Of a stretch of 64,000 nucleotides of DNA, positions 7,132 to 59,200 are shown piece after piece (within the stretch, counting starts at the first letter, position 1; every line of letters begins with the position of its first letter). Location of the stretch: assembly GCF_964188315.1 (NCBI RefSeq), contig NC_135656.1, positions 67,022,001-67,086,000 of the forward strand, in the 5' to 3' direction. Below the pieces are notes generated by a model, which was not told the origin of the DNA, did no database searches, and worked only from the letters and a program-made list of their open reading frames with translations. The translations under genes were made by a program, and so were the position numbers. This DNA comes from Podarcis muralis (taxonomy: Eukaryota).

Positions 7132-9999
7132 TTAGTCGTCAAATTTTCTGCAGTCTCCAAGGTTCCTCAGTCTAAGACGTCTTCTACTTTGTCTGATGCG
7201 GGAAAGACAATGCGAAGAACTCAGGATGAGAATTCAGAAGATGCAAGCTTCATTATTACTCATTAAACAGAAATAGTATTGGTGAGAAAGGTAAGTTCAT
7301 CATTGCTCTATTTCTCGGGGAAGGGAAATGGATGAGAAAGAATCCTGTCCAATAACCTGAAGAGATAGGGTTAAGTATAATTGCTTGATTCTACATTGAT
7401 TTAAAATAACTGCATGTGTATCCCTCAAGACATGGCATTGGAAGCTAAGAAAGAGCAACAGAATGCCTAACATTTAAATGATTAACTGAGAATGTATCTC
7501 TGCTACTCATCATGATCACATGGGGTATTCAATTGCAGATCTCCATTTTAGGTGTGTGAGTTGGTCTTTGTTTTTCTGAAAAAGGGCTGAAGAAATAGGA
7601 CCACTAATGACTCCCTGTCCAGGAGAAAATAGCCTCCAGGCTAATGGAGTCTGTGTGGAGAGAAAGAGCTTTGTTTCCAGCTCTGGGAAGAGTTATTTCA
7701 TATTTCTAAGATGTTAGGCCTGTGTTGGAACAAGCACATGATATTATGCGACTATTGGGTGTATCATTATTGTTTTGTGTCTGGTTTTGAACAAGTTCTG
7801 TTAGTAAAGCTTAAGAAACATATTTTTTGACTGGGCAAGGAAGACTGGGCAAGAAGAACCAGTTTTTATTCACCTATTGCTTCTAAAGAGCAATATTAAT
7901 AAACACAATAGCCGCTACCCATCAATCTAGACAATACTGAGCTGCATGGACCAGTGGCCTGACTCTGTATAAGGCAGATTCTTATGTTCATATGTTCTTT
8001 CCAGCACCACTGCTTGGTAAAACACCCCCATTTTCTAGCTTTCACTGTTCATCCATGTCAGAAGCTTCTGTAAGAGTATATGTTAAGACTTCTCACCAGA
8101 GCAATTCTGAGATCCACATTAGGGAAGCACCTAGTGTAAGCCTTTCCTACCTTCACAATAACTTTCTTATTACCCCCTAATTCCCTGATGGACCTTTGTG
8201 TTATTTTTCTTATGGGCCAACCTTACTACCTTTTGTGTCGTGATAGGCATGGTGGGGCACTTCAACACGATTACCCTTCTGACAGGGGCATCTCTGCTCC
8301 TTGGGGGTGGGGAAAGAGAGTGGTGAGGAGGTTGGTGGACTTGTAAAAGGGTAAAAGAGTATTGGGAAATGATCCATAATGAATTGGGGGGGGGGGATAT
8401 TTAAAAGTACCCCAACCCCCCCGAGTCCTTTCTGTTGGGGATGATTCAGAATGATATTCCCAGGTGTCAAAAAATGTTATTTATGTATGCTACTACTGCA
8501 GCCTGTGCTTTGTTAGCCCAAAAATGGAAAACAAGCAATGTCCCAACCAAAGACGAATGGAAACTTAAGTTGACAGAATATGCACGGCTTGCAGACATTT
8601 CCACCTCATAAGCAAAACCTGTACTCACATATACGCATTGCAGAAGGCACACTTGTTGCCATATGACATGCCATCAGAGCCACAGTGGGGATTGAATTCC
8701 AGAGTGCACTGTGGTTTTGGATATCCTCGACAATATCTCTACAGAGAGAGTAAATTTTACAGTATTATCCATTTTCTGGCAAATCTCATGTGGTTGCTTT
8801 TACCAATCAGGTCTTAGTTGCACATCAGGTTTTTCTTCTTTTAAGAAATCACAAACACACCCGCCCCCAAAATGAAGAGTACTGATAAAATGGGACAGGG
8901 CCGCAGTCTTATTTTTGCACAAAGCAAATCTGCTGAACTCAAAGGCGTCCTGCAAACATTGCAACCAACTATGCTGTGGAAGGACTGGCAAGGAGAGAGG
9001 CAGTGCAAAAGCCATCTGTGTAAACTCCAATAAAGTAGTAGAAGAAGAAGAGTTTGGATTTGATATCCCGCCTTTCACTCCCTTTAAGGAGTCTCAAAGC
9101 GGCTAACATTCTACTTTCCCTTCCTCCCCCACAACTAACACTCTGTGAGGTGAGTGGGGCTGAGAGACTTCAAAGAAGTGTGACTAGACCATAGTCACCC
9201 AGCAGCTGCATGCGGAGGAGCGGAGAGGCGAACCCGGTTCACCAGATTATGAGTCCACTGCTCCCAACCACTACACCATGAATTTGTCTAATCCCTTTCA
9301 ATGCCATCAAGGGTGTGTGTGTGTGTGGCTATCACTGCCTCCCGTGGGAGCGAGTTATATAGTTTAACCATGAGCTGCAGGAAAAAGCAATATTACACAT
9401 CTTGACAGCAAGTTATTAGGATGTTCTGTAATAAGAATAAATGACTGCCACTCACCCGTTCAAAACGTGCTTCAGTGACAACGGCTAGAATGAAAACATA
9501 CAAAATGTAAAAATTCCAAAGCAAATCTACATGTTGAATAATAGTCCATTTGAGAACAAGATACCCTTAATGAGGAGGGGAAGGTGGAGGCTACAACCTC
9601 CCCTCCAACCAAACAAAGGCTTACTCAATGCCTGACTTGCTTCTCCATTTGAAAACATTTGAAAAATGAGATATATTTTATCTTACATTTCCTTTGTTCT
9701 CTTAAAAGTTTGTTTATAGTGAGGTTTGGCAATATGCAGCTGAATTTAAATGTCCCTGATCAGTTGATGGGAAGAGAATCAAATCAAATCAAACTAGCTA
9801 ATCAGTTGACGATACTAATAAAGAAAACCCATTCAACTCCTAGCTGAACTGAAGCCCATTCTGTTGCTTTCAGTAGGGTGATAGAGTAAATCTCACATGA
9901 CAAGATATTCTTTCTCGTTCCTACTGACTAATTTCATATAGAAGCTTCCTTGAGAATAGCTACATCTGAGCATTCACAAGAATATGTGAGGGTTCAACA

Positions 10000-10037
<38 letters not shown>

Positions 10038-10364
10038 TTGTTTGAGAGATGTGCTTCTCTGTTCCCATGTTCCTGTGTGTGACAACAATGCTTCCTTCTT
10101 CCACAAGCTTTCACAAATGAAGCACTTAGGCTTTCAGGGAGATTTTATCAGATTCAGTTGACCACCTAATAAGAGCCTTCATATAGTTTTTGGAACACCT
10201 GGACAATTCATGGATTTTGGGTTCCTTTCTGAGATGGAGTATCTAATGGAACATTTGTAGAAATATCTTTTCCCCAAAGGGAACCTTTGTAATGTGAAAT
10301 ACGACTCACCTGAGTACAAAAAGAAGAACATCAGAGTGAGGAGGAGAAAACTGCCTGGCTTCAT
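7132..10364 (-). CDS. K1: secreted single-domain Kazal-type serine protease inhibitor (SPINK family), intact, P1=Leu
   Basis: Exons 10364-10310, 9484-9456, 8738-8629, 7192-7132, all GT-AG, phases 1/0/2. Protein: [84 protein letters not shown]. Six Kazal cysteines; AATAAA ~140 nt after the stop. Confidence 0.9.
9040..9278 (-). mobile_element. Squam3-type tRNA-derived SINE in K1 intron 2
   Basis: Minus strand starts TGGTGTAGTGGTT (A box), contains GGGTTCG (B box), and ends ...GGGATATCAAATCCAAACTC(TTC)n. Confidence 0.75.
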
Positions 10365-11720: not shown

Positions 11721-11819
11721 AGCAAACAGCCACATGGTGGGGTAGAGAGGCTTGTGACCAAATCCCCCCCCCCCCCCGGCAGCTTATCTTCCAGTTTATG
11801 TTTGTGTCTTGCTATATGG

Positions 11820-12736: not shown

Positions 12737-12805
12737 ACAAGGAGGAGAGAAATCCCATTGCAATAACATTAATTAATAACATTAATAACATTAATTTTTG
12801 AATCA

Positions 12806-16155: not shown

Positions 16156-19100
16156 ATGAAGCCAAGCAGCTTTCTCCTCCTCACTCTGATGGTCTTCTTT
16201 TTGTACTCAGGTAAGTCATATTTCATATTGCAAAATTTCTCTTTCTCGGAGAGTTGTAGGGACCAAAGAATCCATGGACTATTCATGTCTTTAGATGAGT
16301 GTAGGAAGGCTCCACCTGTGTTGACAAAACCCAGTTAAAATCTCCTTGCAAACCATGGTGTTCACTGTCTGAAAGCTTGCGGAAGGAGGGGACATTGTTG
16401 TTAAGCATAGGGACACTGGGGGCAGGGACACACATCCCCCCAAACACACACACACTTGAACCTTCCCACGTTCTTTTGGACACTGAAACATGTCTGTTCT
16501 CAAGGTTCCTCCTATATGAAATTATACATGCCAGGATGAACCAGAATGAATGCCTTCCTATGTGAGATTTACTCTATCAAATAAAGATACTCTACATCAG
16601 GGCTCTACATTGCACAAGGCGCCCACCACTATTCACACAATAGGAGCCTTTTTGAAAACTGAGGCTCGAAACACTAATGCCCCCTAAAGCTACCATGTAC
16701 TCTCCTTTCTTCATGGTCTCCACGTGGCTCTTGTGACATAAAAAGTGGACCTAGCCATGATTCTTAACATGCAAAGCACCACAGCCGGGCATTCAAGGGA
16801 TATCAACAAAACTGGGTCCCAGTTAGTTATGGACTAAACCAGTATATACAGTTATTTGTATTTAGTATAGTTAACTGAACCATTTCCCATTGATTTGATT
16901 GTCTTCCTATCCATGCTCAGTGGCATTTAAAGGAAATTGTATATTGCCAAGGCAAATTATAGATGCATTTTTAGGATAACATAGGATGTACAAGATACAA
17001 TGCATCTCACTTTTCAGTTCCTAGAAATAAATGTTATCAAATAGGCTATTATTCAACATATGGAATTTCTAAACAATTTTCACATTTTCTGTGTTTTGCA
17101 TCTAGATGTTGTTGTGAAAGCAACATGGAAAGCGGTAAGTGGAAATCATTTATTCCTATGAAAGAACATGGACGTAGCACGGAGTTAAGATAAGTGAATA
17201 TATTTTTCNNNNNNNNNNNNNNNNNNNNNNNNNNNNNNNNNNNNNNNNNNNNNNNNNNNNNNNNNNNNNNNNNNNNNNNNNNNNNNNNNNNNNNNNNNNN
17301 NNNNNNNNNNNNNNNNNNNNNNNNNNNNNNNNNNNNNNNNNNNNNNNNNNNNNNNTTTAAAATAAGGCAACAAAAAAACATCAACACAAATATAACATAC
17401 AAGAGCTGGGGTTTTCCCAGGATTTTACATCTCTAGTCCCACCCATTTTTTTTAAAAAAGTTGGTGGTATTATTATTAGTTCCAGTTGCTACCCACAATT
17501 TATAAGAAAGTCTCAGCTTGCGTTCTGTAGTAGCCAAGTGGCGTTATTCTGTTATTACTAGGCAGACCGCCCAACCTTGCAGGCATATTATTTAGCCACT
17601 GTCTTAAGAATCCAGTCACTCACTGTGTTTTTTTTAAAAAAGTATTTATTTGCAAAAACAACCATCAAATGTGTCTAGCATGAAACCCCTAGAGCTGCCC
17701 ACTCACAATTTGGCAGGATTAATCTTCTCTAAAGGGGCTACCATGTCTGCAAATTTTGTTTCGCAGCGTGAAACACTTTGTACCTGTTCTAACCCTGCAA
17801 TATTTTAAAGTTTAAACTGTCTTGCATGAAATCCCTGGCACCGATGATCTATAATTTGACAGGTTTAAGCCCCCGAAATGGGGCCTTACCATGTCACCAA
17901 ATCACATGCCCCTAGTGGGAACTTGGAATGAATAGAGAACAACATTATCACACAATTCCCTGCTTGCCAGGACAATAAATCAGCATTTCCTGTGCTTGAA
18001 TGCACACCTTAATACAACACGTGTTGAATTGTCATTTGCATTCCTCATCTTTGCCTCATTATTAATCATGTCATAATCAGAAAGACCTTGTAGTCCAAAG
18101 GTTAAGTGGGGAGGACCTTTAAAACTGTTGTGTCCTTCATCTTCAGAAATATTGCAAAGGGTATCCAAACCCAGCATGCACCCTGGAGTACCTGGCCCAC
18201 TGCGGTTCTGATGGCAAGACCTATGGCAACAGGTGTCTCTTCTGCAATGCATATATGTGAGTATATCAAAGAATCATGCAGTCGGAAGGGACCCCAAGAG
18301 TCATGTATTCCAACCTCCTGGAATGCAGGAATCCTTTCCCCCCCTGATACATCTTTGTTGGAAGTTAAAAAGTACATGATTATATTTTCACTAAGCATGG
18401 TGAGATATAAATAAACGAAATAAAAAGAAATTGAGAATCAGCACCCATGTAGAAGGGAAAGTCAAGCGGGGGACGGACCCCTCCCCTGGGCAGTGCAGGA
18501 ATCATTTTGCACAACGTGGCGTTCTAAGCCATGGCCCTGAGTTTTGTGTTGCTTATGAGGCCCAAAGGAACATGGTGAGCAGAGCTAATCTGTAGGTAGC
18601 CCTGAATTTGAAGATGGAGTGGCTTGGGAGGGCTATTCAAATGCACCACCCTCCTGACACTCTTGTTGCTGCTGCTAAGAGTGTTGGGGGGGCAGGGGAT
18701 ATATGCCCAGAAGGGCTCTATCTCCATCCCACCAGGCCAGACTCAACGCAAAAGGTAGTAGGGTTGGCCCAGAAGAAAAATAACCAAAAAAGCCATCAGG
18801 GAATTAGGGGATAAAGGTAAAGGGACCCCTGACCATTAGGTCCAGTCGTGACCGACTCTGGGGTTGTGGTGCTCATCTCGCTTTATTGGCTGAGGGAGCC
18901 GGCATACAGCTTCCGGGTCATGTGGCCAGCATGACTAAGCCACTTCTGGTGCACCAGAGCAGCACACGGAAACACCGTTTACCTTCCCGCCGGAGCGGTA
19001 CCTATTTATCTACTTGCACTGTGACGTGCTTTTGAGCTGCTAGGTTGGCAGGAGCTGGGACCGAGCAACGGGAGCTCACCCCATCGCACAGATTTGAACT

Positions 19101-19625
19101 GCTGACCTTCTGATCGGCAAGTCCTAGGCTCTGTGGTTTAACCCACAGCGTCACCAGCTTCCCACAATTAGGGGATAGTAAGAACATTATTATGAAGGCC
19201 TACATTACAAAGGCCTACACTAGGTGTTTCCTTAATGTTGATCTTGGAATTGCTCTTGGTAAAAGTCTGAACATTTGCTGCTAGAGAAGTTTGACACAGA
19301 TGTACGATGAAGGCGGGAGAAGGGAAATCTTCTACAAATGGTAGACCTGAAAAGAATATTGTTCCCTCTTGCTCTATATTGGCTAGGCTGACAGGAAGCT
19401 GTTTTCCCGGGTCTCAGACAGGATTCTTCCTCAGCCCTTTCCCGTCCCCAAGACACAGAGCAATGATGGCATAAGCTTTCCCATCTATATAGTATTTCTC
19501 TTTAAGGAGTTATCATGAAAGCTGCAACTTATGAATTCTCATATTTATTTACTTCTTTTTTTCTCATCAGCAAAAGTGGAAGCAAGCTGAAACTGAAATA
19601 CTTCGGAAAATGCAAAAAAGTTTAA
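16156..19625 (+). CDS. K2: secreted single-domain Kazal inhibitor (SPINK family), intact, P1=Leu, in the inverted block
   Basis: Exons 16156-16210, 17106-17134, 18147-18256, 19571-19625, all GT-AG. Protein (82 aa): [88 protein letters not shown] at 19776-19781. Confidence 0.92.
17209..17355. other. Assembly gap (147 N) in K2 intron 2
   Basis: Run of N; the homologous position in paralogs is a short CA/GA microsatellite region. Confidence 0.97.
18814..19165 (-). mobile_element. Sauria SINE in K2 intron 3
   Basis: Same family as 376-726. 12-bp TSD AATTAGGGGATA at 18802-18813 and 19166-19177. Confidence 0.9.
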
Positions 19626-29300: not shown

Positions 29301-30707
29301 GGCCAGGAGAGGCGAGTCTCCTGTGGATCGGGGCTGCCCTATGCCTCGGGGGAGATAAAAGCCAGCCAGCGCAGGCCCAAGTTGTGGGAGCAACATCATT
29401 GGTTGTCAGTACCAGCCTAACTTCCCTGCTGGAGCTCCTGACCTCACCCAATGCCCTGCCCTGCACCCAGCTTCGACTTCTACGGACTGCCGTAATTTTG
29501 CACCATTGACCTCAGACTGGACTCGGACCTTGCCTCTCGGTTAGCCCCCGGGACCAGCACAGACAGTGTGTGTGCTTTCCTCATGTGGAAATTGCAACCT
29601 TCAACTTCCTCCTTTTATTTGTACCTCCAGCTGACAACAATCAAGCCTAGAGTGCCACTCGCACACACTAAACAAAATTCTGGAACCCTCTTTAAAGCTT
29701 CAAGGAACTTTTATCTGCTTCTTAAAGAATATTTTCCTAACACAATCATAATATTTTGCACTTACCACTTCCCATAATGCTTTAACAGCAACATCTAGAA
29801 GCAAAACACAGAAAATGTAAAGTTATAAAGAAAATCCATATATTGAATAACAGTTCAAATTAGAACAGTTATTTCTAGGAACAGAAAATGAGCATTGTAT
29901 CTTCTACATCCTTTGTTATCCTGAAAGTACACCCATAATGTGGCTTGGAAATATGCAATTTACTTTAAATGTCACAGGGCATGGATTAGAAGATAATCAA
30001 ATCAATGGAAAATGGTGTAATCAGTTAAATAGGAATAACTGAATATACTGATTCATTTACTAGCTAACTGGGTACCAGTTTTTTTATTTCAGCGGAATAC
30101 CCAGCTGTGGTGCCGTGTGTGTTTAGAATTGTTCCCAAGTCCACTATTTATCTACAAGAGCCATGTAGAGATTGTGAAGGAAGCATGGTGTGTGGTGGTA
30201 GTAGCTTTAGGGGGCATTAATGTTTGAAGTCTCACCTCACAAAGAGGTTCCTATTGGGTGGAAAGTGCTGGGCACTATCTGGAATGAAGAGCCCTGACAG
30301 ATTGTGAATCTCACATGGCAAGACATTCATTCTGGTTCTTCCTGACATTTATCATTTCATGTAGGAGGAACCTTGAGAATAGACATGTTTCAGTATTCAA
30401 ATGAATATGGGAAAGGCTCAAGTGTGTGTGTGTGTTTTGGGGGGATGTGTGTCCCTATGTTTGACCAATGTCCTCTCCTTCATTTAGCTTTCAGACATTG
30501 AATACCAAGGTATTCAGGGAGATTTTAACTGGATTTAATTAACACAGGTGGAGCCTTCCTACACTCATCTGAAGACATGAATAGTCTATGGACTGTTTGG
30601 TCCCTACACCTCTCCAAGAAAGAGAACTTTTGCAATATGAAATATTACTCACCTGAGTACAAAAAGAAGACCATCAGAGTGAGGAGGAGAAAGCTGCTTG
30701 GCTTCAT
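26392..30707 (-). CDS. K3: secreted single-domain Kazal inhibitor (SPINK family), intact, P1=Glu
   Basis: Exons 30707-30653, 29794-29766, 27324-27215, 26446-26392, all GT-AG. Protein: [82 protein letters not shown]. Confidence 0.9.
27004..27201 (+). mobile_element. Internally deleted Bov-B 3' fragment in K3 intron 3
   Basis: [21 protein letters not shown]... then AGTCGGACACGACTAA...CAACAA. Lacks 104 bp relative to the 23416 copy. Confidence 0.88.
28626..29742 (-). mobile_element. Solo LTR (outer) in K3 intron 2, interrupted by a second solo LTR
   Basis: Absent from paralogous introns. Inverted termini TATTAGG...CCTAACA, near-TSD CTATC/CAATC, AATAAA on the minus strand at ~28777. Confidence 0.6.
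28965..29561 (+). mobile_element. 597-bp solo LTR (TG...CA) nested in the outer LTR
   Basis: TGTGATGG...CCAGCACA with exact 5-bp TSD GACAG at 28960-28964 and 29562-29566. TATA-like GATAAAAG at ~29354. Confidence 0.85.
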
Positions 30708-35500: not shown

Positions 35501-35940
35501 GAGTACCTTTATTTGATAGAGTAAATCTCACATAGCAAGACATTCATTCTTGCTCTTCCCCCCATGTATAATTTCACATAGGAGGAACTTTGAGAACAGA
35601 CATGTTTCAGTGTTCAAAAGAATGAGAGAAAGGAGAGAAAGGTGTGTGTGTGTTGGGGAGATGTGTGTCCCTGTCCTTAGTGTCCCTATGATTGACCACA
35701 ATGTCCCCTCCTTCCTTTAGCTTTCAGACAGCGAACACCATGGTTTGCAAGGAGATTTTAACTGGATTTGGCCACCACAGGTGGAGCCTTCCTACACTCA
35801 TTTGAAGGCATGAATAGTCTATGGACTGTTTGGTCCCTACACCTCTCCAAGAAAGAGACATTTTGCAATATGAAATATGACTTACCTGAGTACAAAAAGA
35901 AGACCTTCAGAGTGAGGAGGAGAAAGCTGCCTGGCCTCAT
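32547..35940 (-). CDS. K4: secreted single-domain Kazal inhibitor (SPINK family), intact, P1=Phe
   Basis: Exons 35940-35886, 34996-34968, 34068-33959, 32601-32547, all GT-AG. Protein: [86 protein letters not shown] at 36041-36052. Confidence 0.9.
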
Positions 35941-44900: not shown

Positions 44901-45560
44901 CAGTTCTGCTGATTTCCCTTGAAAGCCCGGCTGTGGTGCTTTGCGTGTTTAGAATCATAGCTAGGTTCACTTTTTATGTCAGAAGAGCTACGTGGAGACC
45001 ATGAAGAACGGAGGGTACATGGTAGCTTCAGGGGGCATTAGTGTTTCGAGCCTCAGCTTTCAAAAAGGCTCCTATTGTGTGAATAGTGGTGGGCACCTTG
45101 TGTAGTGTAGAGCCCTGATGGAGAGTACCTTTATTTGATAGAGTAAATCTCACATAGCAAGACATTCATTCTGGTTCTTTCTAGCATGTATGATTTCACA
45201 TAGGAGGAACTTTGAGAACAGACATGTTTCAGTGTTCAAAAGAATGTAGGAAGGTTCAAGTGTGTGTGTGTTTTGGGGGGATGTGTGTCCCTGCCTCCAG
45301 TGTCCCTATGCTTAACAACAATGTCCCCTCCTTCCGTAAACTTTCAGACAGCGAACACAATGGTTTGCGGGGAGATTTTAACTGGATTTAGTCAACACAG
45401 GTGAAACCTTCTTACACTCATCTGAAGACACGAATAGTCTATGGACTGTTTGGTCCCTACACCTCTCCAAGAAAGAGAACTTTTGCAATATGAAATATTA
45501 CTCACCTGAGTACAAAAAGAAGACCATCAGAGTGAGGAGGAGAAAGCTGCTTGGCTTCAT
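38946..45560 (-). CDS. K5: secreted single-domain Kazal inhibitor (SPINK family), intact, P1=Leu; Bov-B in intron 1
   Basis: Exons 45560-45506, 41385-41357, 40414-40305, 39000-38946, all GT-AG. Protein: [82 protein letters not shown]. Confidence 0.9.
41464..44682 (+). mobile_element. Near-full-length Bov-B (RTE) LINE, ~3.2 kb, ORF disrupted
   Basis: RTE-type 5' UTR; APE domain ([26 protein letters not shown]); RT ([26 protein letters not shown]); (CAA)n tail. Frameshift at ~42480 and in-frame TGA at 42843 and 44046. No clear TSD. Confidence 0.95.
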
Positions 45561-48500
45561 GATTTTGCTGGTGGGTTTGGATCTGTTGGCCTCTTAGTGC
45601 TTTTCCAAGCAGTAGATGCTTTTCAGATTCCACTGGTTATGGATGAGGTCTGGTATCTCTTCCATGTATTTATGGAAGTTTCTGCAGCCTTGATGATGAA
45701 ATCTCCCAATTTTTGAGAAATATTTACACATGCAAATGTGATTACACAAGGCTGCAATGTCTTGTACCAGTTTTAATGGTTTCCCTTTCAATGCACATTC
45801 CACGTGTATGCAATAAACATTTGGCAACATTACGGCCTTCTAGTGGGATGATGACATTGCAGGTCACAAGAAATGAGGTACAAACAAATCAGTTTTAGAA
45901 ATGTTGGGATTCTTTTGATCATAGGCAATTGTTTTAGTATAAAGAAAAACAAAGGAGCCTTACTCCTTCAGCATGTAAGCCATAAAATAAAAGAGGTATT
46001 GTTGTCCCAGAAAGTAATACAAACACATTATATACGTCAAACACTTATTATCTTTAATTGATTAAAACCACAGAAGTGGAAAACAAGCACAGAGAAAACA
46101 AGATTTGGTGATAGGAGAAAACAAGCCATGAATGTATGGCGTGAGCATCTTGGATTTCCATTGTTTGAGGCCATTTTCTTCTGAATACAAGTTACTGGGA
46201 AAACAGCAGGTGGGTCCAGTGCTTTTGCCCTCAGGTCCTGCTTCTAGGCATCCCATAGGTATCTGGTTGTCAGCTGTGAAAACAGGATGCTGGGCCAGAA
46301 GAGACACAGGCATGATCCCATATCTTGGCCAAATTTGGAAACAAGAAGCTGGCAAGAGAAAGTCTGGACCTTGGGTCTGGAGAGTTTGGAGGGTTCCAAA
46401 TCTTGGCAGAGCCATTCCCCACTTTGTCGTTCAAAGGAGCTTCCTCTGTTCCTATGTATTTTTACTCAGCATTAAGCCTTATGAAGTAAGGATTCTCTTT
46501 CAAGGAAGAGTGAATAGGATTGAAGCCTGACACTTTATCAGATGTTATCACAACATGGGGGTACTTCCTGCCATTCCCTGCCATAAGCGGATATTCTGAT
46601 GAGCAGTTGAGTTGCCTTCCAGTGGAAAAGGCTGAAGGATGAACACTATTTTCTCTGCTCTGTTGAGATTTCCTTGTGGAACAATACCTGTGAAATTGAG
46701 GAGCTCTTCTGCCTTTCTCTCTCACAAAAACAAGATGGCTGCTGCCTCTAAGAGAAGTCCTAATGAACTTGGCAACTGGGCATATGCAGAACAGGATGAT
46801 GGACCTGGTGGCCCATTGGCCTGATCCAGTAGCTGCTTCTTACATTCCCCTTGTGCAGCAGAACGCTCTCCCCTTCTCTCTTCTCCTTTGCATAGCCTAA
46901 CCTGCCCTAAAAGATTTCCCAAATCCAGCAGAGCAACATAGGCGACACAGTGGGACACCCAGGTGGGGAAAGCAAGGAGGAGAGAAATCCCATTGCATTA
47001 ACATTAATTCTTCTGCTGGCACAATGATGTAGCTGGGTACCCACTTGAATGGCATATATCAATTCATATGATGGCAACTGAATTTTCAATGTGTACTTTT
47101 CTCGCATTTCTCTGTCTCTTTTTTATTTTCTTCTACTAAAAATCAAAAGAAAAGAAAGGTATTATGACAGGGGGTGGGTCCTAGTCTCAGTGTCTAACTA
47201 ATCACCTGTCTGTGTACAGGTGTGTTTTTTTGGGTTTTTTAATCTGCAGAACTCAATTGCCAGAAGTCAGAAATGTCATACTCGAAAGGGAGAAGATTCT
47301 GCTGATTGTTTGACTCAGTTCCCTGATAGTGCGTTATTAGTAACAAACTTCAAGACTGAGCTCTTGCCCAAATCATATAATATTTTTAAGAATAGATAAT
47401 ACACAAATAAATGTATGGAGAGTTTGATAATGTTGCTGAGCTTATTTATTGATAAACCGAATCAAGGTGTTGTGAGATATTCACTGGCTCACAGAAGATA
47501 AGCAAAGCGAAGAATGGATTTTTTTTTTTGTGGTGATGCGATGAGTGAAGCTTAAAGAGAAATGGGACTTCTTTTGTAGATGTTTCATAGTCTTGTGCAT
47601 CTTAAGCTTTTTTGCATTTTCCATAGTATTTCAGTTTCAGCTTTCTTCCACTTTTGCTGATGAGGAAAAAAGAAGTAAATAAATATGAGAATTCATAAGT
47701 TGCAGCTTTCATTATAACTCCTTAAAGAAAAATACTATATAGATGGGAAAGCTTATGCCATAATTGCTATGTGTCTTGGGGACGGGAAAGGGCTGAGGAA
47801 GAATCCTGTCAGAGACCCTGGAAAACTACTTCCCGTCAGCCTAGCCAATATTGATCACGAGGGACTAATGCTCTTTTCAGGTCTACCATTTATGGAAGAT
47901 TCCCCTTCTCCCGCCTTTATCGTACATCTGTGTCAAACCTCTCTAGCAGCAAATGTTCAGACTTTTACCTAGTGCAATTTCAAGACCCACATTAAGGAAA
48001 CACCTAGTGTAGGCCTTTGTTACCTTCAGAATAATGTTCTTATTACCCAATGATGAGGATTTTTGTTATTTTTCTTCTGGGCCAACCCTACTACCTTTTG
48101 CGTTGTGTCTCGCCTTGTGGGATGGCAATAGTGTTGGGATGCTCCTAAGGAATCGGGGATAATTGGCAAGCACCCAGCTGGCCCTAGCCCACGGGCCAAC
48201 ATGCCGGTCAAACTTCAGTCCTTTGTGCAGCATGAATCTGTGACCCAGAGGTTCAGAAGTTCAGAAGCTGGGCACGCAACTCAGCAGAGTAAACGCACAA
48301 CAGAAGCGGGAGGGAGAGGCTTTGTAAAGAATATTTGTAAGCTGTTTATTCAGCATACATCAGGACAAAAGGAAAAACATGTCTTCTCCCCTTCATGTCC
48401 AAAAGCAAGCAGCTTAAGCGATAGCTACACACAAACGGAAGTTCGCAGCAAGCTGTGCTGGAGTGTAAACAGGCATGTGACACACAACAGTCATGCCTGT

Positions 48501-49527
48501 TCCTCTTAAGATGGAATGGAATATTCTAACAGATGGGCCATTTGGGCCTATTTCCCCTCCCCACCCCCCTGGATCACTCTTAGCAGCAGCAACAAGAGTG
48601 TCAGGAGGGTGGTGCATGTGAATAGCCCTCCCAAGCCACTTCATCTTCAAATTCAGGGCTACCTACAGATTAGCTCTGCTCACCATATTCCTTTGGGCCT
48701 CATAAACAAGACAAAACTCAGGGCCATGGGCTAGAACCCCACATTGTGCAAAATGATTCCAGCACTGCCCGGGGGGGGGGGTGTCCCCCGCTTGACTTTC
48801 CCTTCTACATGGGTGCTGATTCTCAATTTCTTTTTATTTCATTTATTTACATCTCACCATGCTTAGTGAAAATATAATCATGTACTTTTTAACTTCCAAC
48901 AAAGATGTCTGAGAGGGAAAAAAAGATTCCTGCACTCCAGGAGGTTGGACTACATGACTCTCGGGGTCCCTTTAGACTGCATGATTCTATGATATACTCA
49001 CAAATATGCATTGCAGAAGTCACACTGGTTGCCATAGGTCTCGCCATCAGAACCGCAGTGGGGACGTTTCTCAAAGATGCATGCTGGGTTTGGATGCCCT
49101 TTGCAATATTCCTGAAGATGAAGGACACAACACTTTTAGAGGTCCTCCCCACTTAACCTTTGGACTGCAAGGCCTTTCTGATTATGACATGCCTAAGAAA
49201 GAGGCACAAATGAGGAATACACCAAGTGTTATATTCAGTTATGCATTCAAGCACAGGAAATGCTGATTCATCGTCCTGGCAAGCAGGGAATTGTGTGATA
49301 ATGTTGTTCTCTATTCATCCCAAGTTCCCTCTTGGGGCATGTGATTCGGTGACATGGTAAGGCCCCATTGTGGGTGCTTAAACTTGTCAAATTATAGATT
49401 GTCGGTGCCAGGGATTTCATGCAAGACACCTTTAAAGTTTAAAATACTGCAGGGTTAGAACAGGGACAAAGTTTTTCACACTGCCAAACAAAATTTGCAG
49501 ACATGGTAGCTCCTTCAGGGAAGATTA

Positions 49528-49913
49528 CCATATTTTTCGTCCCATAGGACGCACTGGCCCATAGGACGCACCTAGTTTTTGGGGGGGGAAAGAAAGGGGG
49601 GGAAATTCCCTTTATTTCCCCCCCAAAACCAGTTCGGAGAATCCAAACCAGGTGGGGGACCAGCGGGATGGCGGCGCTGCGCCTCCCCGCTGTCCCCTGA
49701 GCTTGTGGGGCTGCCTGATGTCTGCCCGAAGTGCGGGGCGCTCTGCTTCAGCGCTCCCCACGCTCCATGCAGCAGGCTGCTATCCACAGCCTAGGGAGCC
49801 CTGTGGGAACTCCAAGCTTCAGCGAAAGCCTGCATTCGCCCCATAGGACGCACACAGATTTCCCCTTCATTTTTGGAGGGGAAAAATTGCATCCTATAGG
49901 GTGAAAAATACGG
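49528..49913. mobile_element. Tc1/mariner-superfamily MITE in K6 intron 2
   Basis: Imperfect ~26-bp TIRs (CCATATTTTTCGTCCCATAGGACGCA / TGCATCCTATAGGGTGAAAAATACGG), TA duplication, and absent from paralogs (GATTAATCCTG). Confidence 0.88.
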
Positions 49914-50788
49914 TAATCCTGCCAGATTATGAGTGGGCAGCTCCAGGGGTTTCATGCTAGACACATTTAACAGTTGTTTTTGCAAATAAATGCTTAAAAA
50001 AAAAAACACACAGTGTGTGCCTGGATTCATAAGACAGTGGCTAAATAATATGCCTGCAAGGTTGGGCGGTCTGTCTAGTAATAACAGAATAACCCCAGTA
50101 GGCTACTACAGAACACAAGGTGAGACATTCTTACAAATTGTGGGTAGCAACTGGAACTAATAATAATTCCACCGCCTTTTTTTTAAAAAAGGGATGGGAC
50201 TAGAGATGTGAAATCATGGGGGAAATCCAGCACTTGTATGTTTTATTTGTGTTGATGTGTTTTTGTTGTCTGTATTATAAATTCTATTTTAAAAATTCAC
50301 ACACACACACACACAAAATAATTTAAAATTCCACAAGAAATATATTTCACTTATCTTAACTCCATGCTACTTCCATGTTCTATCATAAGAATAAATGATT
50401 TCCCACTTATCGCTTCCCATGTTGCTTTCACAACAACATCTAGATGCAAAACATAGATAATGTGAAAATGATTTAGCAAATCCATATGTTGAATAATAGT
50501 CCATTTGATAACATTTATTTCTAGTAACCGAAAAATGGGATGCACTGTATCTTGTACATCCTATGTTATCCTAAAAGTGCCTTGGCAATATGCAATTTCC
50601 TTTAAATGTCACTGAGCATGGATAGGAAGACAAGCAAATCAATGGGAAATGGTTCAGTCTGTTAACTATAATAATTACAAATAACTGTATATACTGGTTT
50701 AGTCCATATCTAACTGGGACCCAGTTCTGTTGATTTCCCTTGAATGCCTGGCTGTGGTGCTTTGTGTGTTTATCATCATGGCTAGGTC

Positions 50789-52887
50789 GACTTCCGGGGT
50801 GGCGCCTCCGGCAATGGCGGACTCCCTCTGAAACGGAGGGACAAGCTCCGCACGAAACGGGTCTTTCCCGCTACGGCGAAGCGGGGACTCTTTAGAAATC
50901 ACAGGCGGATGAAGCCTGTGACCCTGGGACTCGGCGGGCACCCTTAGTGCCCCCCCAACCCGCAAAGGAGCTCAATAACGGGCCCCGAAGCGAAGAGGAG
51001 GAAGTGGTGTGGTGCTGAGAGTCTACCGCTATTTCCGTGGAGCGAAGCCACACAGCCGTTGCCGGAGAGCGCTGCCTTCTTCTTGGACAATTTGGACTTT
51101 AAAAACAACCACTGTGAGTACCTAAACTCGGGAAAATCGAACCACAATTTAAGGAACTGGGAAAAGAAAGGAATTGGACTCAAAAAGGCACTACAATTCT
51201 GTACTGAAACGGGAAGGTCTAACAGGAAGTCAACCTTCCTTTTTTTGTAGTCTGAACAAAGCAAAGACAAAGTAAACTAGAGTTTTGAAAACTATTTTAA
51301 AGGAGTGGATTTCATCATCTAAAATAGCATCATCTAAAATAGCTGAACCCCCCCTTCGGCAGCAGGAGAAGAAGGGGGTGCTTTCTTTGGACTGTTTTAT
51401 CCTGCAGAAGTAAGTTTAAAATAAAGTAATTTTCTGCCGTCCTGACCCAGGGAGCGGGGTGTCAGGACTGACGTTTGAAGCTCATTGACCACGACAGAAG
51501 CTGTTTGACAGATAGCTAAAAGAAGAAAAAAAGCTGCGATTCCACTGTTTCTTTTTGTAACTTTAAACTAACAACGATTGACAAAGTATTTAAAAGTAAA
51601 AGAAACTTTGGGGCTGGATTTGTAACAGAAGTTTTCCCTCTAGGGGGAGATAGTGAAACTGTAACTAGGGATTTCCCAGCCGTTACAGTATAACCTGTGG
51701 GAATTGAATGGTGACCTTGAAGGACAATGTACTCAGAAATGTTGTTGTGCGCTTTTCTCAAAACAAATGCTCTACTGGAAGAATTTCATGAGGGAATGAA
51801 TTTGATGACTGACTTGGTTGGGAACCTTAAGCAGACTGTGGGAAATCTTGGACAGGCAGTAGAAAAAGGTATGGAGTTTACCCAGGATTTATACCAAGAT
51901 TGTGCCTTATTAGAACAGAAGAAAGAAGAGGATTCTGCTGAACCTGGGGAGTCAGAAATGGAGCCACAGACGGAGGTTGCGGCCCTGCAGGAACATGAAT
52001 CTTTGGAATTGGCAACTGGCTTTCGAAAAAATCAGACTCGGAAAGAAGAAGTTTGGATCGAACTGGAAATTGGGGTTGGATGGACCCCCCTGAGCAGGGA
52101 CATATGGACTTTCCGAGTCTGGTAGTGGACTGTGAGAGGTTTGGAGATATGGGGATTCCAAAGTCTGGAGGGGCTTTGAAACATGCTTTTAAGTACTACA
52201 TGGAGCTCAGTTTGGACTGTGGAAAAGGGACCTTTTGGTTGGAAGGAGGCAAAAGCATTATTAAATTGGAGATTACACGAGTGAAAAGAAAATATGAAGA
52301 AAAACAGTGGAAGGGATGTGGAAGAGATTTAAGAGCCTCGGATATTAGGTCATCAGGTTAATGTGCCAGTTTAATGGACAAATGGACTGACGAACCCGGG
52401 ACCTGGGGGATGGGACGTTGGATGAAGATTTTCTCTTTTTTCTTCCTATTTTTTGTTATTAGGATTATTCTACATAATTGATGAATACTAGATGGATGGA
52501 TGAAATGAAATTGCTTGGCTCTGGTATAAAAGTTTAAGGGATTAGGAAAGAATATAATGGTTAAGAGAAGTTACTAAAAATAAGATTTAGGTTAAGGTTT
52601 TTATAGGACAATGAGGAGAATAGAGTAAGGTAATGTAATGAAAGATTAGAATAGGGTAAAAACTTGAAGGTAAGGATTTGCTGAACTGACAAATTGAACT
52701 GGAATACAAAAAAGGGAGGTTTGAGGAGGTCTGGGAAAATAAGTGTATGGAAGATATGTTATGAAAATTAATGTGTTTTTAACTGTTTTTATTTTGTATG
52801 TTTTTCTTTTTTGTATTTTCTTTTTTTTTCACTTTTCTTGTTATAACTTGGAAAACTCTAATAAAATATCTTTAAAAAAAATATAGA
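50789..52887 (+). mobile_element. 2.1-kb non-autonomous L1-like retroposon in K6 intron 1
   Basis: 14-bp TSD ATCATGGCTAGGTC at 50775-50788 and 52888-52901. CpG-rich 5' end (GACTTCCGGGG...AATGGCGG), short coiled-coil-like ORF 51727-52125, T-rich 3' UTR, AATAAA and A-tail; no EN or RT motifs seen. Confidence 0.7.
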
Positions 52888-55669
52888 ATCATGGCTAGGT
52901 CCACTTTTTATGTCACAAAAGCCACGTGGAGACCATGAAGAAAGGAGGGTACATGGTAGCTTCAGGGGGCATTAATATCTCAAGCCTCCATTTTCAAAAA
53001 GGCTCCTATTGTGTGAATAGTGGTGGGTGCCTTGAGAAATGTAGAGCCTTGATGTAGAGTATCTTTATTTGATAGAGTAAATCTCACATAGGAAGACATT
53101 CATTCTGGCTCTTCCTGCCATGTATCATTTCATATAGGAGGAACTTGGAGAACAGACAGGTTTCAGTGTTCAAAAGAATGAGAGAAAGGAGAGAAAGGTG
53201 TGTGTGTGTTGGGGAGATGTGTGTCCCTGTCCTTCATGTCCCTATGTTTGACCACAATGTTTGACCTCCTTCCTTTCACTTTCAGACAGCGAACACCATT
53301 GTTTGCAAGGAGATTTTAACTGGATTTAGCCACCACAGGTGGAGCCTTCCTACACTCATTTGAAGGCATGAATAGTCTATGGACTGTTTGGTCCCTACAC
53401 CTCTCTGAGAAAGAGACATTTTGCAATATGAAATATGACTTATCTTAGTACAAAAAGAAGACCGTCAGAGTGAGGAGGAGAAAGCTGCCTGGCTTCATGA
53501 TGATGCTGGTGAGTTTAGTTCTGTCTGCCGCTTAGTGTTTTTCCAAGCAGTAGATGCTTCTCAGATTTCACTGGCTGCAGTGAGGTCTGGACTCCTTCCC
53601 TAAATATATAGACATCATTGTGGCACCAATGATGAAATCTCCCAGTCTCAAGAAATATTTATATGTGTAAATAGGACATTACAGAGGGCAGCAATGTAAT
53701 ATACCATGCATAACAGTTCCCTTCCTCTGCAGACACTAGGGACATGCAAGAGATATATGGTAACCAGTAGCTTAGGAAGTTGCATGCAAAGTAGCTTGTC
53801 TTGACAATAAGCCAAAACAAGGCTGAAAAAAAGACTCCAGTGATAAATTGCATGTCATATAGTATTTGCCAAAAAATAATTTATTACATGTACTCCTAGC
53901 CAACACTGATTTCAGATATAAATATTACGGGGGTGGGGAGTTTAGAGGTAGCTATCAGGAAAACCCATGGAAAGAGCCTTACTGGTTCAACATGTAAGCT
54001 ATAAAATAAAAGAGGTATTGTAAAGGTTGTCCAAGAAAGCAATACAAATACGTTATATACGTCAAACGCACCAATTATCTTTAATTATTTGAAAACCACA
54101 GAAGTGTTGCTACCACTTGGCAGAGAAATGGGCAGGCACTCGACTTTGGTAACAATATTCATTATATGTGGTTTGGAAAGATCTTGATACTTCTAAAAAG
54201 AAGGATGATGCAACCATCATTCAGCAAAACTATAAAACTAAGGAGTCGCACCTACAATTGTGAGGCATTAATTCTGTCTCATCTCCTTCCTAACCACCGC
54301 AGCATCTCTCTCCAACCCTTATGCCTTTGCTTATTAGCCACCCATGTATAGTCCACACCAACATCCCCTCTCTATTCACCAGACCAGCAGTTCTCTGCCC
54401 AATTTCCCTTATATGTTTGTATGTGTTTTACATGATAGATCTTGGCCAATAATGGAAACAAGAAGCTGGCAGGAGAAAGTCTGGACCTTGGGTTCAGAGA
54501 GTTTGGAGGTTTCCAAATCTTGGCAGAGCTATGTCCCACTTTTTCCCTCAGAGGCACTTCTCCTGATCCTAAGCATTAAGCCTTATAAAGTAAGGATTCT
54601 CTTTCAAGGAAGAGCGAATAGGATAGAAGCCTGACACTTTATCAGATGTTTGCACAACATGTGGGTACTTCCTGCCATTCCCTGCCATAAGTGTATATTC
54701 TGATGAGCAGTTGAGTTGCCTTCTAGTGGAAAAGGCTGAAGGATGGACACTATTTTCTCTGCTCTGTTGAGATTTCCTTGTGGAACAATACCTGTGAAAG
54801 TGAGGAGCTCTTCTGCCTTTCTCTCTCACAAAAACAAGATGGCTGCTGCATCTCAGAGATGAATGAACTTGGCAACTGGGCATATGCAGAACAGGATGAT
54901 GGATCTGGTGGGCCATTGGCCTGATCCAGCAGCTGCTTCTTATGTTCCCCTTGGGCAGCAGAACCTTCTCCCCTTCTCTCCTCCTCCTCCTCCTCCTCCT
55001 CCTCTTCCTCCTCCTCTGCATAGCCTAACCTGGCCTAGGGATTTCCAAAATCCAGCAGAGCCACATAGGCGACACAGTGGGACAGCAAGGTGGGGAAAGC
55101 AAGGAGGAGAGAAATCCCATTGCATTAACATTATTTCTTCTGCTGGCGCAATGTTGTAGCTGGGTACCCACTTGAATGGCATATATCAATTCATATGATG
55201 GCAACTGAATTTTCAATGTGTACTTTTCTCTTATTTCTCTGTTTTTTCCCCCTATTAAAAATCAATAGAAAAGAAAAGAAATGTATTATAGCAGCGGGAT
55301 CGGTTTTTTTTAATCTGCAGAACTCAATTGCCAGAACTCAGAAATGTCATACTCAAAAGGGAGAAGATTCCACTGATTGTTTGACTCAGTTCCCTGATTG
55401 TGCGTTATTAGTAAGAAACTTCGACACCAATCTCTCGTCCAAATCATATAATAATTTTAAGAAAAGATAATACACCAATAAATGTATGGAGAGTTTGATA
55501 ATGTTCCTGAGCTTATTTATTGATAAACCAAATTAAGATGTTGCGAGATATTCACTGGCTCACAGAGGATAAGCAAAGAGAAGAATGGATTTGTTTTGTA
55601 GTGATGCAATGAGTGGAGCTTAAAAAGAAATGGGACTTCTTTTTTTGATGTTTCATAGTCTTGTGCATC

Positions 55670-56243
55670 TTAAGCTTTTTTGCATTCTCCATAGTATTTC
55701 AGTTTCAGCTTGCTTCCACTTTCGCTGATGAGAAAAAAAGAAGTAAATAAATATGAGAATTCGTAAGATGCAGCTTTCATTATAACTCTTTAAAGACAAA
55801 TACTATATAGGTGGGAAAGCTTATGCCATCATTGCTGACAGTCTTGGGGATGGGAAAGGGCTGAGGACAGATCCTGTCTGAGACCCTGAAAAACTGCATT
55901 CTGACAGCCTAGCCAATATTGAGCAAGAGGGACCAATGCCCTTTTCAGGTCTATCACTTTGTGGAAGATCCCCCTTCTCCAGCCTTCACTGTACATCTGT
56001 ATCAAACTTCTCTAGCGGTAAATATTCAGACATTTACCTAGAGCAATTCCAAGATCCACATTAAGGAAACACCTAGTGTAGGCCTTTGATACCTTCAGAA
56101 TAATGTTCTTATTATCCCCTGATTCCCTGAAGGGCTTTTGTTATATTTCTTCTGGGCCAACCCTACTACCTTTTGCGTTGAGTCTGGCCTGGTGGGATGG
56201 CGATAGAGCCCATTTCCCCTCCCGGTCCCCCTGGATCACTCTT

Positions 56244-56275
<32 letters not shown>

Positions 56276-59200
56276 GAGTTTCAGGAGGGTGGTGCATGTG
56301 AATAGCCCTCCCAACCCACTCCATCTTCAAATTCAGGGCTACCTACAGATTAGCTCTGCTCACCATGTTCCTTTGGGCCTCATAAGCAACACATAAATTA
56401 GGGCCAAGGGTTAGAATACCACATTGTGCAAAATGATTCCTGCACTGTCCAGGGGAGGGGTGTCCCCCCCCCCGCTTGACTTTCCCTTCCACATGGGTGC
56501 TGATTCTCTTTTTCTTTTCCGTTCTTTTATTTACATCTCACCATGCTTAGTGCAAATATAATCAAGTACTTTTTAACTTCCAACAAAGATGTATCAGGGG
56601 GGAAAGGATTCCTGCATTCCAGGAGGTTTGAATACATGACTCTTGGGGTCCCTTTAGACTGCATGATTCTTTGATATACTCACATATATGCATTGCAGAA
56701 GTCACACTTGTTGCCATTGGTCTTGCCATCAGAACCACAGTGGGGACGTTTCTCGAAGATGCATGCAGGGTTTGGATGCCCTTTGCAATATTCCTGAAGA
56801 CGAAGGACACAACAGTTTTAAAGGTCCTCCCCACTTAACCTTTGGACTGCAAGACCTTTCTGATTATGACATGCCTAAGAAAGAGGCAAAGATGAGGAAT
56901 GCAAATGACAATTCAACAAGTGTTATATTAAGGTGTGCATTAAAGCACAGGGAAATGCTGATTTATTGTCCTGGCAAGCAGGGAATTGTGTGATAATGTT
57001 GTTCTCTATTCATCCCAAGTTCCCACTTGGGGCAAGTGATTTGGTGACATGGTAAGGCCCCATTGCGGGGGCTTAAACCTGTCAAATTATAGCTCATCAG
57101 TGCCTGGGATTTCATGCAAAACACATTTAAAGTTTTGCATCAAGAAAGTACAACTTACAAAGGAGAACAATGCATCGCTCCCTATAAGGAAAAACATGCC
57201 TAAGGAAACCTCACCAGGCTTCTGGTCCAAAATGAGATACTTAGATGAAGCAGAATTAGGCTACAACCAGGTAGAATACCCCCAGGAGGAGGCCTTGTAT
57301 AGCAAAGGCCCAGTGTCTACCAATGTGAGTACTCTATATTTACCATCTGACACCATAGAACACCTGGGCAGTTCTCCATGTAAAGATGATCGTCGGCTGC
57401 CACGTAGAATGGTAAACTCCAACAGTACCTTGGAAGATAATTGACAAGGAGTGGTTCTTGGTAAAGCCAACCTTAGCTTTTTATCATGGAATATCGCAGG
57501 ATGGCAAAAAAGGCAGCTGACCCATCCTTTGCTAAATTTATCCAAGGCTACAACATAGTATTTTTACAGGAGACATGGCTCACAGGGGACCTAGAAGTTA
57601 ACGGCTTTTCCTCAATGTCCCTCACAGGATCCCCAAGCACTAAAGGGGGGAGAGTCAAGGGTGGCCTAGGCATTTTAATATCTACAAGGTTGAGGGTGTC
57701 CTTAGTAAAGTTAGAGACACTGAAACACCTGGCTATGGCCTTACTAGTGAAAAGTAGATTCTTCACCCTGCTACTGATTAATGTATATCTTCCCCCCCAA
57801 AGAGGCAAGCAGCTGATTAAAAACACCTGGCATGGGCTGGAAACATACATTGATGGTTTGATGACTCAAACCCCTGCAGCTTCAGTGCTAGTGGCTGGTG
57901 ATCTTAATGCCAGAATTGGCCAGTCTGACGAAGCACTATATGCACAATTCCACGACTCGCCACCCATCGTGGAAGAAAACCACCTTATACCCACTAGATT
58001 CTCAAAAGACAAGGGATGTAATTAAGCAGGTCTGTGCCTATTGCGTCTTTCTAACAAGCTGGACCTGGTCATACTAAATGGGCGCAAGAATGGGAAGACT
58101 TGTGGGGAATTTACTTTTATATCTAATGCAGGAGCTTCCACTATCGACTATGTTATGGTATCATTTAATCTCCTAAATAGAGCCCTTGAGTGCAAAGTGG
58201 AGGAGAGGGTTGATAGTGATCACTTACCGCTCTGCCTTCTCCTGGATGCAAGAAAAGACTTATTTTGCAACGATAAACTTGAAGACCCCAGGTCCTCCAA
58301 CATGGAGTTGAGATACTCACGTATTAGATGGTCCGAAAAGCTGAATGCCGAAACATCTGAAAGGCTATATTCGGACATATTCCTCATGAGAAGAGATAAT
58401 CTCTTAAACTCACCATGTTCTGAATCTAGAATAATCTTGTTCCTGGATCTGATCTCACTTTTGCAACCCCACCTGATTCAAAAAAAGACATCGCACCAAC
58501 CTTTATTCCCCAACAAATCCAAACCCTGGTTTGATCAGGAATGTATTGCTACAAAGCGTTCTTTGCTGGATAAGTACAGGAATTACAAATCAGCGAATTT
58601 ACTCTTGCTTCCTGCGGAATGGTTCAAAGCCAAACGTAAATATAAAGATCTGATTAAAAAGAAAAAGCTTCAGGCCCAAAGGGGGGAGTGGCAATGTTTA
58701 TTAGAGGCCTCTCGAAGGAAAGGCTCAGCCACTTTTTGGAAAATAGTCGTGAAAAGCTGGCAAGACTCCCTGATTGAAATTGATTATACTATACCAGTTG
58801 GGATTTGGGAGGCTTACTTTCTATCTTTATATACACCAAATCAACATCTGCAGGCCCTGCCCCCAGCTCCGAGTGATATTGGCGCCGAATGGCCCCCAGT
58901 ACCAACTGAAGAGATCTATAGGCTCATCCAATCCCTTAAACCTGGAAAAGCACCCGGCGTAGACAACATTACACCGGAACTCCTTAAGGCTAATGTTGAA
59001 TGGTGGGCCCCTGTGCTAGTTGCCCTATTTACCAGCATAGATCAATCGGCCACTATCCCTGAGGACTGGGGATTAGCAATCATCATCCCTTTATTCAAGA
59101 AAGGGAGCCGATCAGACCCGGCTAATTACAGGCCAATCAGCCTCCTAAGTATCATTAGCAAATTGTACGCTGCCCACTTATGCGACAAATTAGTGGACTG

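Follow-up and report, generated by a model that had tools for sequence, protein, structure and literature searches.

Two features of the avian ovomucoid third domain belong to the textbook picture of the Kazal family, namely the hypervariability of its protease-contacting residues and the old debate over whether positive selection is responsible. Laskowski and colleagues are said to have described in 1987 that variation in the third domains of bird ovomucoids is concentrated at these contact residues. SPINK1 is a four-exon gene whose single Kazal domain is split by an intron after the fifth cysteine. Here we describe a tandem array of single-Kazal genes in a stretch of 64,000 nucleotides from the lizard Podarcis muralis (assembly GCF_964188315.1, contig NC_135656.1, positions 67,022,001 to 67,086,000 of the forward strand), which we call the window and number from its first letter. 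We think, with a probability of roughly 70%, that the array preserves an old repertoire of inhibitor specificities, kept by selection while the genes that carry it evolve by duplication, loss and gene conversion. The picture is one of old specialisation that has since been maintained, rather than of a demonstrated arms race, and positive selection in the strict sense, a ratio of nonsynonymous to synonymous rates (omega) above 1, is not demonstrated.

The lizard genes share features with both systems. Their Kazal domain has the cysteine pattern of the ovomucoid third domains OMTKY3 and OMSVP3 and keeps P3 Cys, P2 Thr, P1' Glu, Asn P15' and Tyr31; the loop of the copy that we call K2, CTLEYLA, is nearly the OMTKY3 loop CTLEYRP, and as in avian ovomucoid the variation is centred on contact residues. 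Unlike the avian domain, which is the third of a three-domain egg-white protein, the lizard domain has a gene to itself, signal peptide included, with one Kazal domain per gene, and its variation lies among tandem paralogs whose types are kept between genera, whereas bird variation lies among orthologs of one gene. With SPINK1 the array shares its four exons, a signal peptide followed by one Kazal domain, an intron that on the lizard side follows the fifth cysteine, and a tandem cluster. However, the lizard sequence is far nearer to ovomucoid domain 3 (E 1e-13 vs ~2e-3), its signal peptide is specific to the lineage, and the P1 residues in the window are Leu, Glu and Phe rather than the Lys or Arg of trypsin-type SPINKs.

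Reactive-centre hypervariability in duplicated inhibitors has also been discussed for SERPINB3/B4 (PMC4136820), snake-prey serpins (PMC12646145) and potato type II (Pot II) inhibitors (PMC2259423). As in the serpin, Kunitz and Pot II families, the tandem duplicates of the lizard differ most at the reactive site and site models return omega above 1. The fold is a different one, however, the lizard signal of omega above 1 is lost under synonymous rate variation (SRV), and the clearest signal in the lizard is that loop types have been maintained against gene conversion. Snake 'ovomucoid-like' RefSeq proteins (P0010-P0016) have the same signal peptide and single-Kazal layout as the lizard genes. 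Kazal-type transcripts and proteins have been reported from the venom glands of Bothriechis (PMC3128066) and are possible further relatives. A literature search found no paper on this lizard family, although its coverage was incomplete and so is not proof of absence.

Spliced RNA contigs from one copy, K4, gave the four-exon structure (coding lengths of 55, 29, 110 and 55 nt) that we then used to model all seven copies. A 383-nt spliced contig matches K4 without mismatches over 32378-32601, 33959-34067 and from 34968 onward, and a second contig covers K4 exon 1 (35886-36001); both came from runs X1 and X2 in a query of reads over 30600-36300, and their RNA nature is read from the spliced joints. 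A six-frame scan together with the gene models found seven Kazal copies in the window, five of them intact (K1-K5) and two broken (K6, K7), with K2 on the plus strand and the other six on the minus strand. No eighth Kazal exon was found in the window by tblastn. The copies, and the assembly gap that falls within one of them, are as follows.

7132..10364, minus strand: K1, intact gene (GT/AG splice-site gene model); coding exons 10310-10364, 9456-9484, 8629-8738 (exon 3, with the loop) and 7132-7192; loop CTLEFNP at 8688-8708, P1 Leu; product identical to RefSeq P. muralis XP_028576864.2 (P0032).
16156..19625, plus strand: K2, intact gene, the only copy on this strand; exons 16156-16210, 17106-17134, 18147-18256 (exon 3) and 19571-19625 (gene model); loop CTLEYLA at 18177-18197, P1 Leu; product identical to RefSeq XP_028576866.2 (P0004).
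17209..17355, no strand: assembly gap (N) in K2 intron 2.
26392..30707, minus strand: K3, intact gene; exons 30653-30707, 29766-29794, 27215-27324 (exon 3) and 26392-26446 (gene model); loop CTEEYRA at 27274-27294, P1 Glu; product identical to RefSeq XP_077779602.1 (P0017).
32378..36001, minus strand: K4, intact gene, transcribed (RNA contigs); coding exons 35886-35940, 34968-34996, 33959-34068 (exon 3) and 32547-32601, with a 3' untranslated region (UTR) to ~32378; loop CIFEKRP at 34018, P1 Phe.
38946..45560, minus strand: K5, intact gene with a long interspersed nuclear element (LINE) fragment in intron 1; exons 45506-45560, 41357-41385, 40305-40414 (exon 3) and 38946-39000 (gene model); loop CTLEYHP at 40364, P1 Leu; product identical to RefSeq XP_077780764.1 (P0006).
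47602..53498, minus strand: K6, pseudogene; exon equivalents 53444-53498, 50411-50439, 49002-49111 (exon 3) and 47602-47656 (gene model); loop CIFEKRP at 49061, P1 Phe; lesions are a TAA at codon 18 and AT in place of GT at the exon 1 and exon 2 donors.
55670..62550, minus strand: K7, probable pseudogene and chimera; exon equivalents 62496-62550, 61575-61600, 56684-56793 (exon 3) and 55670-55724 (gene model); loop CIFEKRP at 56743, P1 Phe; lesions are an AT at the exon 1 donor, one codon lost from exon 2 and the conserved Kazal Tyr changed to Asn.

Exon 3 is 110 nt long in all seven copies, with an AG acceptor and a GTGAGT donor, and each gene encodes a protein of ~82 residues that consists of an 18-residue signal peptide, a short N-terminal stretch and one Kazal domain. 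RefSeq already annotates the products of K1, K2, K3 and K5 as 'ovomucoid-like' proteins of P. muralis. A sequence-only reading of this DNA had listed five loop strings for the seven copies, and the scan recovered them exactly and in place, four strings once each and CIFEKRP three times; the span that it had marked, 8629-56793, runs from the last base of K1 exon 3 to the first base of K7 exon 3. Self-comparison of the window showed tandem units of ~6-8 kb, in which the K2 and K4-K7 units are 88-93% alike and the older K1 and K3 units 75-80%.

Exon 3 by itself was recognised as a Kazal_1 domain (Pfam PF00050, MEROPS I1) in all seven copies, with 29.8-49 bits against a cut-off of 21, and the RefSeq proteins identical to K1, K2, K3 and K5 scored 54-61 bits over the entire profile (1-49 of 49). 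Six cysteines in the classical spacing and the spacer Asn are present in 7/7 copies and the conserved Tyr in 6/7, K7 having Asn. An AlphaFold2 (AF2) model of the K3 protein (predicted local distance difference test score, pLDDT, 89.6) found complexes of OMTKY3 as its best matches in the Protein Data Bank (PDB), with a root-mean-square deviation (rmsd) of 0.6-0.8 Å over 49 residues, 55-57% identity and a target template-modelling (TM) score of 0.88-0.93. The nearest solved sequences are the turkey and pheasant ovomucoid third domains, OMTKY3 being the nearest solved relative of K2 exon 3, and the K2 Leu aligns on the P1 residue of OMTKY3, Leu18, so that the earlier assignment of the loop to P3-P4' was right.

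Membership of the Kazal family predicts tight, substrate-like inhibition of serine proteases. By the standard (Laskowski) mechanism, such a protein would bind a serine protease as a substrate does, with the loop around P1-P1' seated in the enzyme's active site, and its target would be set by the side chain at P1. A Leu or Met at P1 would favour elastase, chymotrypsin or subtilisin-like enzymes, a Phe chymotrypsin-like enzymes, a Glu Glu-specific enzymes and a Lys or Arg trypsin-like enzymes. From K1 to K7 the P1 residues are Leu, Leu, Glu, Phe, Leu, Phe and Phe. The sequence-only reading had held that no copy has Arg or Lys at P1, which is correct for the window; it does not extend to the P. 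muralis genome, where a Lys-P1 member lies outside the window (P0035, CTKEFNP), nor to the family, in which two P. raffonei copies have Arg (CTRELNP) and Lacerta agilis has a Lys-P1 loop, CTKEYLA.

The reactive loop is indeed the variable part of the domain. Among non-Cys positions from P6 to P4', eight of nine vary across the seven copies; the remainder of exon 3 has 12 variable positions among 26 (Fisher p=0.029). Nucleotide counts made earlier by hand were reproduced: K4 and K5 differ in exon 3 by 13 nonsynonymous (N) and 2 synonymous (S) changes (12 N and 2 S in the 36 whole codons, 1 N in split codon 37), and between K2 and K3, codons 17-26 show no difference while 11 of the 17 nucleotide differences fall in codons 8-16. 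The diversifying selection proposed on these grounds stood in one part, since variability is centred on the contacts, and fell in the other, since omega above 1 is not robust.

Protein search, cluster look-up and nine loci yielded 22 gene models in all, which come from the four lacertids P. muralis, P. raffonei, L. agilis and Zootoca. When the 61-aa open frame around K3 exon 3 served as the query of a word search, two proteins only were reached, and the family was reached through a full-length Zootoca protein and its clusters. Across these genera the loop types are conserved. The Phe-type loop CIFEKRP is identical in six genes from all four species, which differ from each other at synonymous sites and in their flanks; the Glu-type loop CTEEYRA is identical in three species, P. 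muralis (K3), P. raffonei and Zootoca; and the K1 group (CTLEF/LNP) and the Lys group (CTKEF/LNP) each keep their P1 residue, with only P2' varying. A K2/K5-like subgroup is the variable one, its P1 being Leu, Met, Lys or Arg across species and copies. All other Lacertini together form the sister group of Podarcis, so that the split between the two is the Lacertini crown, which is dated to 15-47 million years ago (PMC6733905). The CIFEKRP loop is older than the split of Podarcis from Zootoca, and the repertoire of loop types arose before the Lacertini crown.

The exon that carries the loop and the sequence around it tell different histories. In the exon 3 tree the Phe-type genes form a clade (support 100/97) and groupings by genus are rejected (p=6.5e-4 and 0.02). 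A 3' block that runs from the end of intron 3 through exon 4 to 300 nt beyond it instead places the Zootoca Phe gene with the Zootoca Met gene (99/99) and the Lacerta Phe gene with two other Lacerta genes (100/100), and a Phe clade is rejected (approximately unbiased (AU) test, p=2.5e-6). In the 5' block the Phe genes share a promoter type of their own, except K7, which has the K2/K5 type; placing K7 with the Phe group there is rejected (AU p=4e-8). Divergence along the gene shows the same mosaic: K6 and its paralog K5 diverge by 12.7% around the loop and by 3.3% immediately beyond it, and K6 differs from the Phe genes of Zootoca and Lacerta by 6% at the loop and ~10% in the introns. A 15-sequence alignment gave identities for 300-nt flanks (e.g. 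79% for K4/K5) that indels had distorted, and pairwise alignments were used instead; K2 intron 3 is not globally alignable owing to an insertion. K7 itself combines a Phe-type loop with a promoter and exon 1 of K2/K5 type, and from about codon 19 of exon 3 it has the K5/K2-like states TGT, AAG and ATC, which suggests a breakpoint inside exon 3, just past the loop.

Codon analysis places constraint on the loop within types. At contact residues omega is 0.29 on branches within the four conserved orthogroups and 1.31 on all others, a significant difference (p=4e-5), and the second value does not significantly exceed 1 (p=0.42). For non-contact residues the order is inverted, with omega 0.86 within orthogroups and 0.34 between them. 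A subset of 'hypervariable contact sites' gave a between-group omega of 2.5 (p=0.02), to which we attach no weight because the sites were chosen from the same data.

These patterns show genes that turn over by duplication, pseudogenisation (K6, K7), inversion (K2) and the formation of chimeras (K7), and gene conversion that homogenises the portion made up of intron 3, exon 4 and the 3' UTR within each genus. Purifying selection on each loop type would keep the reactive-site exon as an island of divergence among paralogs. Most of the loop diversification would belong to branches that separate the paralog groups and would have proceeded at a near-neutral or somewhat faster pace. Only the K2/K5-like subgroup turns over fast, and it is the likeliest place for specificity still to be changing. 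The fullest version of this reading, to which we would give even odds, is of a squamate-specific array in which selection has held the Lys, Leu, Glu and Phe loop types as conversion-resistant islands since the Lacertini crown (15-47 million years), with the rest homogenised within genera and one subgroup changing its P1 residue.

The strongest alternative is that positive selection continues at the reactive loop in an arms race with the target proteases. We consider this unlikely, although standard tests speak for it. These were run with a codon-likelihood program written for the analysis, whose M0 log-likelihood (lnL -873.417) equals that of iqtree2, on the 37 codons of exon 3 from 21 sequences and on an intact set of 19 for which all branches were optimised. 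With 21 sequences, M2a was preferred to M1a (twice the lnL difference, 2dlnL, 24.7, p=4e-6), M8 to M8a (2dlnL 23.4) and, in the comparison that the sequence-only reading had proposed, M8 to M7 (2dlnL 26.7, p=1.6e-6), with omega 3.4-3.9 at ~27% of sites; without the pseudogenes the M1a/M2a difference was 31.4. Codons 4, 5, 9, 10, 13, 15, 16, 24, 29 and 31 were flagged, six of the ten being canonical contacts (P5, P4, P1, P2', P3' and P18'; Fisher p=0.039). Per-site tests found the nonsynonymous rate (beta) above the synonymous rate (alpha) at P4 only (p=0.016, uncorrected). The changing P1 of the K2/K5-like subgroup points in the same direction, as do differences at contact positions among P. 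muralis protein records and the comparison of K2 with its positional counterpart in the P. raffonei array, which shows 6 N and 0 S changes in exon 3.

The positive signal of the standard site models was robust neither to SRV nor to a priori site classes. Synonymous rates truly differ along exon 3: in 22 sequences, codons 21-23, 28, 30, 32, 33 and 36 have no synonymous change, not even among the most ancient paralogs, while codons 9-19 have many, so a single-rate model underestimates the synonymous rate (dS) of the loop and inflates omega. Estimated site by site, the synonymous rate is zero for codons 21-24, 26-34 and 36 and high for codons 9-19. When rates could differ from site to site, a common factor scaling the synonymous and the nonsynonymous rate, the fit was far better (M1a+SRV lnL -798.4 vs -810.4 for M2a) and the likelihood-ratio test lost its significance (M1a+SRV vs M2a+SRV, 2dlnL 1.2, p=0.54; 1.7, p=0.42 for intact genes). 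In partitions fixed beforehand, omega was 0.92 for the ten variable OMTKY3 contact residues and 0.46 for P2-P4', values that contradict the earlier expectation of a dN/dS above 1 at loop sites, and the P1' Glu, P2 Thr and Cys codons showed clear purifying selection in per-site tests. Recombination in and around exon 3, documented above, is known to produce false positives in such tests, and the conservation of four loop types across genera (omega 0.29) also argues against an arms race.

Neither comparison of exon with intron supports acceleration. K2 and the inverted P. raffonei gene (Pr_4), at first a candidate for a fast ortholog pair, differ by 5.4% in exon 3 and by 8.1% in the introns; with introns at that level exon 3 does not exceed neutral divergence and the two are doubtful orthologs, and we rejected the pair. 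The K4/K5 loop differs by 26.7% against 5.3% in intron 3 (p=1.3e-4), but this excess arises because the introns have been homogenised and are younger than the loop.

The frozen synonymous stretch comprises exon 3 codons 20-36 (18204-18254 in K2, 33961-34011 in K4) and extends even to paralogs whose introns are unalignable. It suggests a constraint at the nucleotide level, such as splicing signals or RNA structure. More generally, standard codon tests and exon-versus-intron comparisons can wrongly yield the conclusion that a hypervariable reactive site is a positively selected one, here because synonymous sites in the core of the exon are strongly constrained and gene conversion has made the introns alike.

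Relaxed constraint, in which redundant duplicates drift neutrally and the loop differences have no functional meaning, we regard as improbable. Contact omega between groups is close to 1 (0.996-1.31), the omega=1 class takes 70% of sites in the best-fitting model, two of the seven copies are pseudogenes and N:S ratios over whole coding sequences are high between orthologs. Neutral drift does not, however, explain why contact omega within orthogroups falls below that of non-contact residues, why six genes from four species share an unchanged CIFEKRP despite synonymous and flank differences, or why the loop exon holds its type while neighbouring sequence is homogenised; K4, moreover, is transcribed and correctly spliced.

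The assembly gap lies 75 nt past K2 exon 2 and 791 nt ahead of exon 3, and its flanks are collinear, in the same orientation, with the units of K4, K6 and K7, where ~54-66 bp occupy the corresponding place; since all four K2 exons lie outside it and the product equals a RefSeq protein, the reading frame is not at stake. An inverted gene at the array position of K2 is found also in P. raffonei and Zootoca (K2 16156-19625 compared with L008 24674-27910 and L003 19314-24172), and the array order Phe type, Glu type, inverted gene, K1 type is common with Zootoca, so the K2 inversion is old and not an assembly error beside the gap. That the copies or the orientation of K2 stem from a mis-assembled collapsed or duplicated repeat is hardly credible: the gap inside K2, the 88-93% likeness of units and the lone plus-strand copy might suggest it, but the copies differ by 7-25%, each with its own insertions and lesions, four products equal independent RefSeq models, the inversion and gene order recur in the other species, and DNA runs from another study contain 72-73% of the words of a 10-kb stretch.

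Several points weigh against an old, maintained repertoire. The target proteases, and even inhibitory activity, are predictions from homology; standard site models favour omega 3.4-4.6 at ~27% of sites; strict positive selection is possible during the splits between paralogs, and with 37 codons the SRV model may have low power to tell an omega of 1 from one of 2-4. The loop might have escaped conversion through the chance placement of tracts rather than through selection. The arrays of the three other species were read in part, and orthology within the variable subgroup is tentative. Bulk P. muralis RNA runs X10 and X11 gave almost nothing on the genes, two spliced reads, so that the case for expression is built on the contigs of the coded runs X1 and X2.

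If the repertoire is indeed maintained, the conserved acidic-P1 loop of K3 (CTEEYRA) would point to a dedicated Glu-specific target protease, which would be unusual for a vertebrate Kazal inhibitor. The array also offers a natural panel of near-identical Kazal scaffolds that carry Leu, Glu, Phe, Lys, Met or Arg at P1 and are type-conserved across lacertid genera, usable both to test the sequence-to-reactivity rules derived from the ovomucoid third domain and to seek the lizard or microbial proteases that these inhibitors control. To a specialist the result will be tidy rather than surprising, with genes already annotated and a phenomenon that is textbook for the Kazal family.

Some observations concern neighbouring or related genes. 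In Zootoca the Lys-type array member has as its neighbour a three-Kazal gene of 198 aa (L009 13858-20648, minus strand), whose last domain has a CSLEY loop; this gene may be the true ovomucoid, with its third domain the source of the single-domain genes. A two-Kazal call in L. agilis (L005 18415-21069, minus strand) likewise adjoins the Lys-type member. Older P. muralis records (P0002, P0023) differ from the window by R/H at P3' of K3 and N/K at P6 of K2, which may be reactive-site polymorphisms. Open frames of LINE fragments at 41575-44045 and 57486-58022 (both plus strand) encode apurinic-type endonuclease and reverse transcriptase domains and sit antisense in K5 intron 1 and K7 intron 2, accounting for the long introns of K5 and K7 and for a peak of AT skew at 40-44 kb.

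RNA depth was very high in all four runs at 31364-31554, 33274-33464 and 33847-34037, which are short stretches of K3/K4 intergenic DNA and K4 introns, and nearly all reads there continue into unlike sequence; these stretches, at 31.4, 33.3 and 33.9 kb, behave as a dispersed transcribed repeat resembling a short interspersed nuclear element (SINE), not as these genes. A contig of run X1 at 34067 / 30653-30732 represents an abundant spliced transcript (depth ~100) with a Phe-type exon 3 (TTC at P1, first base A), an exon 2 identical to that of K5 and K6 and an exon 1 of K3/K5 type. None of the copies in the window is the same, and the transcript comes either from a further copy outside it or from an allele of another individual.

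The 18-residue signal peptide (exon 1, e.g. 16156-16210) is near-invariant across lacertids, vipers, elapids and colubrids, in contrast to the variable mature protein, a layout that typifies fast-evolving secreted families. The signal peptide of K4 (35886-35940) has an Arg at residue 2 and a Lys at residue 12, in the middle of its hydrophobic core; the gene is transcribed and spliced all the same, and its product may be secreted.

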